From the sequence record NC_023557.1: DNA of 64,000 bases. One strand, written 5' to 3'. The notes under the pieces were generated by a model. It had not been told where the DNA came from and did no database searches. It saw only the letters and a program-made list of their open reading frames with translations. Every line of letters starts with the position of its first letter. Within the stretch, counting starts at the first letter, position 1. Below are positions 39,491 to 53,105 of this stretch, piece by piece. Both the position numbers and the translations under genes were made by a program.

Positions 39491-39943
39491 ATGTCAGAAC
39501 AAAAACCCCTTATCCCGTTTCTCCACTTCCAGATCGATGCATTCCGTAATTACCTGGTCGCTAATGATCTGACCCCGTACGCCGTCTTTACCTTGCCTAA
39601 AGGTCTGGACCCGGTACTGGATCGCTACGCCGACCCTGCCAGTGGCCAGCTGATCCTTAACCTCAGCCCTAACTCCTGTGGTCACTACGAGATCACTGAT
39701 GATGGTTATATGGTTCTGCATCAGCGTTTCTCGGGTAAAGCCCACGAAGCGTTCCTGCCGGTCCAACACCTGCTGGCCATGTATGCGCGTGAACGTCAAG
39801 ACCAGGCCATGGTCTTTGCCGACATCGAGCACACCTGCGATGATGATGTGAAATTTGTTGAAGATGAGACTGTGCCGGAAGTGGATGACACTAACGTAAC
39901 AGCCCTGCCCTTCAAGAAACCCACATTAACGGTAGTCAAGTAA
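39491..39943 (+). CDS. sspB: SspB, ClpXP protease specificity-enhancing adaptor
   Basis: DNDLTPY-like ANDLTPY, GQLILNLSP, RFSG, LLAMYARE, acidic linker and C-terminal ClpX-binding tail PTLTVVK (E. coli LRVVK). Confidence 0.9.
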   Translation: MSEQKPLIPFLHFQIDAFRNYLVANDLTPYAVFTLPKGLDPVLDRYADPASGQLILNLSPNSCGHYEITDDGYMVLHQRFSGKAHEAFLPVQHLLAMYARERQDQAMVFADIEHTCDDDVKFVEDETVPEVDDTNVTALPFKKPTLTVVK

Positions 39944-46076: not shown

Positions 46077-46104
46077 AAGAGGACTTCGGTCCTCTTTTAT
46101 GCCC
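46077..46104 (+). terminator. Hairpin AAGAGGAC-TTCG-GTCCTCTT followed by TTATGCCC
   Basis: cUUCGg hairpin plus family motif. Confidence 0.75.
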
Positions 46105-49260: not shown

Positions 49261-49554
49261 ATGTCGTTCACACTGTCAAAGAAACTCGTTCCTGTTCTGC
49301 TCACCGCGAAAGACGGCCGTAAGTATGCCGTTGTTAATGGCGGTAACCGCGCCAAGCTGACCCTCGGCTTTGATGACGGGATCAGTCAGGAGGTTGCTGT
49401 GCCTTCTGAGCAGATTCCTGAAGAAGCGCGCACCAACGGCACCAAACTGTATTTCGATGCAGAAGGTGCGGTGACGGGCTGGGATGCAGCACCGGGTGGA
49501 AAGACGAAGTCAAGCACGACTGCCGGATCAATGACCATGCGTCGTCCTGGCTAA
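49261..49554 (+). CDS. Hypothetical protein
   Basis: 97 aa, GAGGT RBS. Confidence 0.6.
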   Translation: MSFTLSKKLVPVLLTAKDGRKYAVVNGGNRAKLTLGFDDGISQEVAVPSEQIPEEARTNGTKLYFDAEGAVTGWDAAPGGKTKSSTTAGSMTMRRPG

Positions 49555-49562
49555 ACCATCAG

Positions 49563-49588
49563 GGGGAGGGAAACCTCCCCTTATGCCG
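49563..49588 (+). terminator. Hairpin GGGGAGG-GAAA-CCTCCCC followed by TTATGCCG
   Basis: GNRA hairpin plus family motif. Confidence 0.75.
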
Positions 49589-49600
49589 TATGGAGGGGTT

Positions 49601-50131
49601 ATGAGTTTATTGATCTACACTGACGGGCTGTTAATCGGGGATCGTCGGGGAACACGTAATGCAGAGCATGAGCGATTCATCCGTGACATGAAGAAGACTC
49701 ATGTTTCGAAATGCAAACGCTTAGCGTTAGGGGTGGTAGGCGAAGAGATTCATCCAACGGATCTGCCAAAGGTAATGACCTTCTTTATTAACTCGTTGAC
49801 TGATCACTATCATCGCGAACACGACGTGGGTTATGCACACAACTATAGCGAAGAAGAGTCATTGGTGGCGGGTCTTGAGAACCGTCGTTTTATTCTGATG
49901 ACGGCAGATCGGGCTTTTATCATTAACTTCGGCTCTTTGACTGAGATCACTCACGAGCCCTGGTATTGCTCCGGTAACGGAATGGCGATGGCCGATGTCT
50001 TTCTGACTGCAGGGATGTCGCCAGGGAAAGTGATTGAAGCGGTAGCCAAACTCAACCTGGAAGTGGGGCATTCATTTACCCGTGTCGAACAGTCTCGCTT
50101 AAAACCCTTGATTAAGAAGGTGGAAGAATGA
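49601..50131 (+). CDS. Ntn-hydrolase / HslV-proteasome-beta-like protein
   Basis: (M)SLLIYTDGLLIGDRR...KK...LALGVVGE and WYCSGNG...AGMSPGKVIEAVAKL match the beta-subunit layout; GGAGG RBS. Confidence 0.6.
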   Translation: MSLLIYTDGLLIGDRRGTRNAEHERFIRDMKKTHVSKCKRLALGVVGEEIHPTDLPKVMTFFINSLTDHYHREHDVGYAHNYSEEESLVAGLENRRFILMTADRAFIINFGSLTEITHEPWYCSGNGMAMADVFLTAGMSPGKVIEAVAKLNLEVGHSFTRVEQSRLKPLIKKVEE

Positions 50132-50646
50132 GTGGCATATTCGCAGCCCAAGGACGTAACCTCGTGTTTCCTACTCAACTGGAGAAAAGGAGTGGGCTTT
50201 ACTACACCCCGCCTCCTGAAGCGTGCTGGATGCCCTGGGGGCGTTACTTCCCACTGTCAGCAACCAGCTTCAATATCCTCGAGCATTTCATGACCGGAGA
50301 AGATCTGCCACGGGAGAGTTCATACTCGACGCACGTGCTCGGTATTCTGGTCACACCAAACGGACTGATCTACGAATACATCAATACCGTTGAAGGGATT
50401 AGACGGCGGGTTGTTCCTTTGGGTAAAGGTGCAGTGTATTGTCGCTCCGATGATCCATTGCTGGAAGAAGCTATGACAGCAGCGATGGTGGTGCATGATC
50501 AGCTGGTTGACGCCATTACACTGGTAGGGAAGTCCCGCAAACTGATGACCCATCAGTACAAATATACAACACTGGACAAAGTATATGCGGAAATAAAGGA
50601 ACGTAAAATTGTCCTGCAACCGCCCACGAGGAATAATCTAATTTAA
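50128..50646 (+). CDS. Possible degenerate paralogue of the upstream Ntn-fold protein
   Basis: Same size, ATGA-coupled; ILVTP vs ILMTA, VYC vs WYC, C-terminal helix pair. Confidence 0.4.
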   Translation: MSGIFAAQGRNLVFPTQLEKRSGLYYTPPPEACWMPWGRYFPLSATSFNILEHFMTGEDLPRESSYSTHVLGILVTPNGLIYEYINTVEGIRRRVVPLGKGAVYCRSDDPLLEEAMTAAMVVHDQLVDAITLVGKSRKLMTHQYKYTTLDKVYAEIKERKIVLQPPTRNNLI

Positions 50647-52330: not shown

Positions 52331-52921
52331 ATGGAGAGGATAACATTAGCTTGGCTAAGAGCTAATCAAGGAAGGAAATCTCTGGAAGATCGTTTGTTTC
52401 AATTCGGTCACGTTTATAGTGAGAGAGATTCCTGTTTCACCTGGCGTGGGATGGTGGATAATTACGGCTACGGAAAGATAAAGGTTAAAAGTAGATTGGT
52501 GGGTGCACACAAACTGTCTTATCTGCTATTCAAAGGGGATATTCCAGAAGGTATGGTAGTTAGACACACGTGCGATAACCCAGTCTGTATTAACCCCTCT
52601 CATTTAATCGCGGGTACGGTAAAGCAAAACGTTCATGATGCAATAGCAAAAGGCCGTGCTTCTTTTCAGAATGCTATCAATTCATCGGTATGTAAGTTTC
52701 TGCCGGCCAACGCTATTATTATGGTAGATAGAAAGATAGGCCCACTACTATGTTATGCAACAACCCGGCGATTAGCCCTTGCTGATAATTCTAAAGTTTA
52801 CTGGGGTCGTCCGTGTAAGTCACACGGCATGCCTTGGAGAAGAACCAGTAATGGCGAATGTGTCTATTGCAGGCACGAATACCGAGCAGGTGTGAAGTAT
52901 ACACCTAATGGAAAGAGGTGA
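52331..52921 (+). mobile_element. Free-standing HNH homing endonuclease
   Basis: CFTWRG...GYG...AHKLSY...VVRHTCDNPVCINPSHL..GT..QN; C-terminal C..H...C..C; visibly more AT-rich than its flanks. Confidence 0.85.
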
Positions 52922-53074: not shown

Positions 53075-53105
53075 AAGGGGTGGGGTAACTCACCCCTTTA
53101 TGCCG
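53075..53105 (+). terminator. Hairpin AAGGGGTGGG-GTAA-CTCACCCCTT followed by TATGCCG
   Basis: GNRA hairpin plus family motif. Confidence 0.75.

Follow-up and report, generated by a model that had tools for sequence, protein, structure and literature searches.

A predicted HslV-type peptidase and its conserved partner without catalytic residues in the Erwinia jumbo phage Ea35-70

Two overlapping genes of phage Ea35-70

The DNA analyzed here, a stretch of 64,000 nucleotides (the window), corresponds with 100% identity to bases 1-64000 of Erwinia phage Ea35-70 (NC_023557.1), and window and genome coordinates are equal. Ea35-70 is a 271-kb jumbo phage of the genus Agricanvirus, a fire blight (Erwinia) phage, and in this region it shares ~97% identity with phage RAY, a characterised nucleus-forming chimallivirus (PMC10299810). 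We have analyzed two adjacent genes, Ea357_056 and Ea357_057, whose products (gp056 and gp057) appear in the database record as 'hypothetical protein', at 49583-50131 and 50128-50646, respectively. A first-pass annotation, made from the sequence, had proposed that they form a proteasome/HslV-like pair with one active and one degenerate subunit. Two open reading frames on the same strand were indeed found, overlapping in the sequence ATGA, where the ATG of gp057 (50128-50130) and the TGA of gp056 (50129-50131) are interlaced. The second gene is thus of about the same size as the first (176 and 172 amino acids) and translationally coupled to it, as had been proposed, and the motifs listed for gp056 (M-S, D-RR, MKK, GVVG and SGNG) were all present. 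The features of the locus are collected in Table 1.

Table 1. Features at and upstream of the gene pair, and the HslU homologue of the same genome (coordinates of NC_023557.1)
Feature	Position	Strand	Description
Ea357_055 (gp055)	49261..49554	+	97 amino acids; phrog_11059; directly upstream of the HslV-like gene
Hairpin	49561..49582	+	9-bp GC-rich stem, GAAA loop; terminator-like; between gp055 and gp056
TATGCCG	49582..49588	+	Promoter-like; immediately 3' of the hairpin; includes ATG 49583
GGAGGGG	49592..49598	+	Shine-Dalgarno sequence for the 49601 start, read from the sequence
Ea357_056 (gp056)	49601..50131	+	176 amino acids from ATG 49601; predicted HslV-like Ntn peptidase subunit, Ser nucleophile
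gp056 catalytic codons	Ser2 49604-49606; Asp14 49640-49642; Lys32 49694-49696; Gly47 49739-49741; Gly125-Asn126-Gly127 49973-49981	+	Predicted catalytic set
Ea357_057 (gp057)	50128..50646	+	172 amino acids; predicted catalytically dead Ntn/HslV-fold partner (pseudo-subunit)
Ea357_115 (RAY gp116)	85889-87598 (outside the window)		HslU homologue, E 4e-59 to E. coli HslU

Predicted structures, catalytic residues and conservation

Read from the ATG at 49601, gp056 begins MSLLIYTDGLLIGDRRG, followed by MKK, GVVG and SGNG; counting the initiator Met as residue 1, these motifs contain S2, D14, R15, R16, K31, K32, G44-G47 and S124-G127. The protein matched PHROG 1040 'peptidase HslV family' (E 3.5e-9), and in other genomes its orthologues carry the annotation 'peptidase HslV family' or 'proteasome-like hydrolase'. 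The AlphaFold2 model of gp056 (predicted local distance difference test, pLDDT, 95.1), with helices at residues 55-72, 84-90, 128-136 and 141-151, was compared with known structures, a check suggested by the first-pass annotation, and its best match was HslV (Foldseek E 2e-8, probability 1.00). The model aligned with the Thermotoga maritima and Escherichia coli HslV chains with a VIA-align Z of 14.6 over ~150 of its 176 residues, and Ser2 superposed on HslV Thr1 (model residue 2 on chain residue 1).

The family of gp056 was collected by an exhaustive profile search of 1.84 billion representatives, which was needed since a word-indexed homology search caught only 2 relatives; it yielded 188 relatives at E ≤1e-3. 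Among 149 unselected matches, 143 start with M-T or M-S. In an alignment of 137 relatives, for which T or S at position 2 was a selection criterion (73 have T and 64 have S), conservation was 99% for D14, 100% for K32, 98% for G47, 99% for G125 and 82% for G127. The residue in the middle of the GSG motif, Asn126 in gp056, is S in 68 of these relatives, T in 39 and N in 19. A search of the PDB with the single gp056 sequence gave chance matches only. The family profile (90 members) matched solved HslV chains (E 4e-6 to 1e-2) ahead of proteasome beta chains, and its position 12 aligned to HslV residue 15, which puts D14 on HslV D17.

Methionine aminopeptidase cuts the initiator Met before Ser or Thr, and mature E. 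coli HslV begins with its nucleophile. As both residues allow Met removal, mature gp056 should likewise begin with its nucleophile. In the proteasome-like triad, Ser is accepted as a variant at position 1 (PMC8665760). From sequence and model, we conclude that gp056 is an HslV/proteasome-beta-type N-terminal nucleophile (Ntn) hydrolase whose nucleophile is Ser and whose catalytic set is complete, and we predict it to be active. The Ntn-hydrolase layout that the first-pass annotation had read from the motifs is therefore borne out by the HslV fold, by the position of Ser2 on Thr1 and by catalytic positions conserved at 98-100%.

When gp056 is compared with bacterial HslV (ClpQ), which is both its best structural match and its best natural sequence-profile match, fold and size are the same, the nucleophile follows directly on the initiator Met, the equivalents of the Asp, Lys, Gly47 and G-x-G are kept, and an HslU homologue is encoded in the Ea35-70 genome. 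The differences are that the nucleophile is Ser rather than Thr, the family alternating between the two, that Asn replaces Ser in the GSG motif, and that the first beta-hairpin is four residues shorter, so that the Asp stands at mature position 13 in gp056 and 17 in HslV. Furthermore, gp056 is always paired with a dead partner of the same fold. Bacillus subtilis CodW, a bacterial peptidase of the HslV family, has likewise been proposed to use an N-terminal Ser as nucleophile; it is said to act with CodX as a homo-oligomer and is not known to have a pseudo-subunit partner. The family profile of gp056 matched chain 2z3a, which we take to be CodW, with an E of 5e-5.

The gp057 model was obtained from a 9-sequence alignment (pLDDT 83.5; predicted template modelling score, pTM, 0.80). 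Its Foldseek matches were nearly all proteasome, HslV, BPH and Anbu chains. An unbiased scan, independent of Foldseek, compared it with 48,161 PDB representatives; almost all of the top 47 matches were Ntn hydrolases, led by Anbu, proteasome beta, HslV and BPH (Z 6.5-7.9, 128-142 aligned residues), and acylases, NAAA, ceramidase, connectase and bile-salt hydrolases came next. In BFVD the model matched the 182-amino acid gp056 orthologue of phage Special G (E 1.2e-4) and also the HslV-like protein of phage Moabite. Because the list of matches is uniform and coverage is full-length, we consider the fold assignment secure despite the middling Z values, and gp057 is predicted to have an Ntn fold closest to the proteasome/HslV group.

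The residue that falls on Thr1 is G3 in gp057 and Asn in most of its relatives, and the family alignment contained no conserved Ser/Thr nucleophile, Asp or Lys at the equivalent positions, in agreement with the first-pass description of a second protein without catalytic residues. The family does keep G38, P42, Y82, G99-K-G101, E113 and Y144. With phage AH06, identity is 63% for gp057 and 58% for gp056, and with Moabite 30% and ~19%. Since gp057 is conserved at least as well as gp056, we regard it as a constrained pseudo-enzyme and not as a decaying copy.

The residual similarity of the two proteins noted in the first-pass annotation holds at the level of the fold but not of the sequence. BLASTP gave a non-significant E of 4.5, a shallow profile-profile comparison also detected no similarity, and deep profiles compared with hhalign reached a probability of 14% over 76 colinear columns. 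With such a weak match we claim no sequence homology between gp056 and gp057. The analogy with alpha and beta proteasome subunits fits loosely: an active and an inactive protein of one fold are present, but the gp057 model opens with a beta-hairpin like that of beta/HslV subunits, with a beta-strand from residue 4. The N-terminal helical extension H0 of 20S alpha subunits gates the ring (PMC8665760); an alpha-type H0 is absent from the gp057 model, which is therefore not alpha-like.

The gene pair is a conserved module of giant phages. An HslV-like gene followed by a gp057-family gene was found in AH06, Moabite, Totoro, 2050HW, PhiEaH1 and EarlPhillipIV; the partner in the Machinavirus pSal-SNUABM-04 is more divergent, and is tied to the gp057 family through the EarlPhillipIV protein. 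The same arrangement was seen in all 10 metagenomic contigs looked up, and some pair-bearing contigs are 250-290 kb long and carry jumbo-phage genes. Homology of the partner was detectable in Agricanvirus, Moabitevirus, Iapetusvirus, Derbicusvirus and most of the metagenomic giant-phage contigs examined. Every locus examined has exactly one gene of each kind, and the partner comes immediately after the HslV-like gene; the two overlap by 1-23 nucleotides in 12 of 17 loci, and the gap never exceeds 25 nucleotides. The pair, with a small tailed protein (gp055) ahead of it, was seen in at least 15 phage loci. Wellington gp153/gp154, considered as a further pair, was discarded since it is not HslV-like. 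The gp057 model also has structural relatives in BFVD among proteins of the Ralstonia phages RSF1 and RP12, Pseudomonas phage Noxifer, Klebsiella phage Miami and Erwinia phage RisingSun (template modelling score up to 0.78). Given these further jumbo-phage relatives, the module may be wider than the loci examined.

Upstream signals, gp055 and the HslU homologue

The annotated start of Ea357_056, ATG 49583, lies 18 nucleotides upstream of 49601 and would add seven residues (MPYGGVM). This ATG is part of a TATGCCG sequence that directly follows a hairpin with arms at 49561-49569 and 49574-49582 in the centroid RNA fold. The stem is kept in AH06 with a different loop, and a strong hairpin occupies the same intergenic spot in 14 of 15 related loci. 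The hairpin followed by TATG(CCG) occurs at least 11 times between genes on the + strand of the window, and in 8 of the 15 related loci regardless of reading frame. GGAGGGG ahead of 49601, a strong Shine-Dalgarno sequence, is unpaired in the predicted RNA fold and is kept in AH06 and RAY, and the Moabite and Totoro orthologues start directly at M-S or M-T. Since the ATG at 49583 sits within a recurrent, frame-independent motif, most relatives start with M-S or M-T, and GGAGGGG precedes 49601, we rejected 49583 as the start; it is most likely a regulatory signal, the true start of gp056 being 49601.

Late promoters of phiKZ, used by its non-virion RNA polymerase, have the consensus 5'-TATG-3', with G as the transcription start (PMC4666361). 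By analogy, the element upstream of gp056 looks like a terminator followed by a phiKZ-type 'TATG' promoter, which further favours the start at 49601. A search of RNA-run archives found no infection transcriptome. With a terminator-like hairpin and a promoter-like motif between the two genes, gp055 is probably on a separate transcript from gp056. Other sites with a GC-rich hairpin and T(T)TATGCC(G) lie on the + strand at ~5467, 35301, 40459, 46098, 47117, 53099, 53674, 58064, 62321 and 63546, and on the - strand at ~6051, 11375 and 27577; the motif also occurs in related metagenomic phages. The ATGs in TATGCCG at 46099 (the annotated start of Ea357_050) and at 53100 (an open reading frame start) are used, or could be mistaken, as starts, and the annotated starts of Ea357_056 and probably of Ea357_050 may be artefacts of the motif. 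It was also observed that CCTCC in the 3' arm of the hairpin (49574-49578) is complementary to GGAGG at 49592-49596 within the Shine-Dalgarno sequence; such pairing could in principle hide the ribosome-binding site of gp056, and the minimum-energy fold leaves the site free.

Homologues of gp055 occupy the same position in AH06, Moabite, Totoro, PhiEaH1 and four other loci (L012, L014, L018 and L020), with E values of 1e-4 to 1e-10 by BLASTP or hidden Markov model searches; loci L017 and L019 gave weak matches. In Derbicusvirus, Machinavirus and locus L021, the protein encoded upstream had no detectable homology to gp055. Common to the family are a motif resembling G[TD]K[LIV]YFDAEG and a flexible tail in which a G-[S/C] lies 7-12 residues before the C-terminus (in Ea35-70 the tail reads ...TAG-SMTMRRPG). 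Of 12 members, 11 have this G-[S/C], and in many tails the last two residues are a basic one and then a hydrophobic one. Searches of Pfam and the PDB with gp055, profile searches included, gave no match and no known family, and feature searches of the ESM Atlas with gp057 and gp055 gave neither a usable lead nor a stored model. Judging from its sequence and position, gp055 could be a third component of the module, as a substrate, an adaptor, a docking-tail activator, a tag or a regulator.

The HslU homologue Ea357_115 has an enlarged intermediate domain (~residues 113-329) and ends in ...KELGTLVNN; two 179-amino acid genes of unknown function follow it. Its RAY counterpart, gp116, localises to the phage nucleus (PMC10299810). 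Downstream of the pair, the start of an ATPase of the same PHROG 4339 as Ea357_115 is 2.4 kb away in Machinavirus, and that of an HslU-domain ATPase is 1.5 kb away in Derbicusvirus; one metagenomic locus has an AAA gene 1.5 kb downstream. Elsewhere in the window, at 39491-39943, there is a homologue of the SspB-like ClpXP adaptor (Pfam PF04386, E 1e-6), and in an unrelated metagenomic contig an SspB gene lies 2.5 kb from the HslV-like pair, which hints at a wider phage proteolysis toolkit. An HNH homing-endonuclease gene, Ea357_060A (52331-52921), is found ~1.7 kb downstream of the pair and is typical jumbo-phage mobile-element clutter.

Proposed function, alternatives and significance

What was observed directly, namely the fold, the catalytic residues, the coupling of the genes, the conservation of the module and the presence of a phage HslU, can be accommodated in the following model. 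Translation of gp056 would start at 49601, methionine aminopeptidase would strip the initiator Met, and Ser, now residue 1, would work with the Asp equivalent to HslV D17, the Lys equivalent to K33 and an oxyanion hole at Gly47. gp057 would be made from the overlapping gene in a roughly equal amount (~1:1) through translational coupling, and the two proteins would together build an HslV-like hetero-oligomer, in the form of a ring or double-ring chamber. In this chamber cleavage would occur at gp056 sites only, and gp057 would provide structure, gating or docking surfaces. An AAA+ unfoldase, most likely Ea357_115 or alternatively host HslU, would unfold and feed the substrates, so that host or phage proteins would be degraded during infection. 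We lean slightly towards this reading, in which the phage encodes a hetero-oligomeric HslV-type peptidase built from active gp056 and a gp057 pseudo-subunit and probably fed by an AAA+ protein.

Several points weigh against it. The complex of gp056 and gp057 is suggested by the conserved overlap of their genes, and their common ancestry by the modelled fold and not by sequence, with a middling Z of ~8. Where the proteasome GSG motif has Ser129, gp056 has Asn and the family S, T or N, and the Pfam and NCBIfam models, those for HslV and the proteasome included, gave no match to gp056 or gp057 even at E 10. Ea357_115 lies 36 kb from the pair, which is thus not part of an hslVU operon here; Moabiteviruses, judged from an organism tally, have the pair and no detectable HslU homologue; and in four 20-kb metagenomic neighbourhoods no AAA+ gene was found within 10 kb of the pair by Pfam annotation. 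The C-termini of the phage HslU homologues are presumably unlike the docking tail of E. coli HslU. Finally, the RAY study, which places gp116 in the nucleus, does not mention gp056 or gp057, and they are absent from the supplements examined (PMC10299810).

Proteasome-like proteins have been described in phages before. PPH, AAH and CPH are compact group-I proteasome-like proteins encoded in Caudoviricetes genomes (Fuchs, Alva and Lupas 2021; PMC8665760), and they have in common with gp056 a Thr1/Ser1-Asp17-Lys33 triad and the absence of a propeptide. PPH has ~140 residues and lacks helix H2 (PMC8665760), whereas gp056 has 176 residues and four helices; size and helix content exclude that gp056 is a PPH. 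For these homologues neither an informative gene context nor a co-occurring AAA+ partner was found (PMC8665760), in contrast to the conserved three-gene context of gp056 and the nearby HslU in several genera. With the 20S beta rings of eukaryotes and Sulfolobus acidocaldarius, which mix active and inactive subunits, the phage pair would share the principle of separately encoded subunits of one fold in one chamber, and S. acidocaldarius and eukaryotic beta chains were among the structural matches of gp056 and gp057. It differs from the 20S proteasome in that the pair has no alpha-type subunit, the gp057 model lacking an N-terminal helix H0.

In a more elaborate form of the model, the module would be a minimal hetero-oligomeric phage proteasome in which a Ser/Thr-1 subunit and a pseudo-subunit act with an HslU located in the phage nucleus, and in which gp055 serves as adaptor, gate or tag, allowing targeted degradation where host proteases are excluded. 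We regard this full version as rather unlikely.

The pair could instead be an ATP-independent processing peptidase that cuts gp055 at the G-[S/C] of its tail, a maturation of a small tailed protein comparable to the trimming that exposes the C-terminal Gly of ubiquitin-like tags, or the gp055 tail could dock into the ring as an activator or gate. In nearly every locus the HslV-like gene is immediately preceded by a gp055-like gene, with homology across genera, and this is what the idea would predict, as is the near-universal G-[S/C]; many loci carry no AAA+ gene nearby, which recalls the phage homologues of Fuchs et al. Yet the hairpin and promoter-like motif probably place gp055 and gp056 on different transcripts, gp055 matches neither ubiquitin-like nor other families, no homology to it was detectable for its positional counterparts in Derbicusvirus, Machinavirus and L021, and the cleavage site is a guess from a short motif. 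We consider such a processing role unlikely.

A regulatory role of gp057 was also weighed, in which the pseudo-enzyme keeps gp056 inactive until needed, or is a decoy that mimics HslV to divert host HslU/HslV. Enterobacterial hosts possess HslVU, and gp057, which is strongly constrained though catalytically dead, has conserved surface motifs of its own (DSLFTPxG...P, GKG and EE) at the would-be active site. However, a protein that is tightly coupled to an intact enzyme and always found with it would more typically be an obligate subunit, and the phage carries its own HslU. Such a function appears improbable to us.

The first-pass annotation had also raised the idea of an isopeptidase that removes the ubiquitin-like conjugates of Bil/CBASS-type E1-E2 defences. 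Phages need counters to conjugation-based defences, and in one related contig the anti-CBASS gene Acb1 lies ~7 kb away. The idea found no support: PADLOC gave no match for gp055, gp056 or gp057, neither Pfam matches nor similarity to JAB/MPN or other deconjugases were found, no E1, E2 or JAB gene was present in any neighbourhood examined, and the recurrent genomic partner is instead an HslU-type unfoldase. As the catalytic architecture is moreover that of a chambered endopeptidase, we judge an isopeptidase very unlikely.

A non-hydrolytic proteasome homologue, such as a connectase-like transpeptidase or ligase acting on a specific motif, is just as hard to credit: connectase, a protein ligase of the proteasome family, has the same triad (PMC8665760) and its chains were among the structural matches of gp057 (Z 6.1-6.3), but gp056 is nearest to HslV, and its model has no long insertion between strands 3 and 4, where connectase carries its signature insertion (PMC8665760). 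A role in virion maturation was discarded, since neither gene carries a structural annotation and prohead proteases are not relatives of this family.

The enzyme itself is of a known kind, and sister phages already have genes annotated as HslV-like. Literature searches found no description of the dead partner, of the three-gene module or of a phage HslV heteromer, and the obligate dead partner and the three-gene module appear to be undescribed. For annotation, Ea357_056 and its orthologues need a corrected start codon, and gp056 and gp057 could be named HslV-like peptidase subunit and HslV-fold pseudo-subunit, respectively.

In archaeal and eukaryotic proteasomes, active and dead subunits are known to share one chamber. 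The rings of HslV and BPH are homo-oligomeric (PMC8665760). If our preferred model of a hetero-oligomeric HslV-type peptidase is correct, subunit specialisation would therefore have arisen independently in these phages, in a system that is very small and tractable. The model would also join up three observations that have stood apart, namely the phage proteasome homologues seen as orphans (PMC8665760), the HslU-like protein in the nucleus of RAY, for which no peptidase partner had been identified (PMC10299810), and the SspB-like adaptor that these phages also encode. Should the complex act in or at the phage nucleus, that compartment would have its first assigned protease system.

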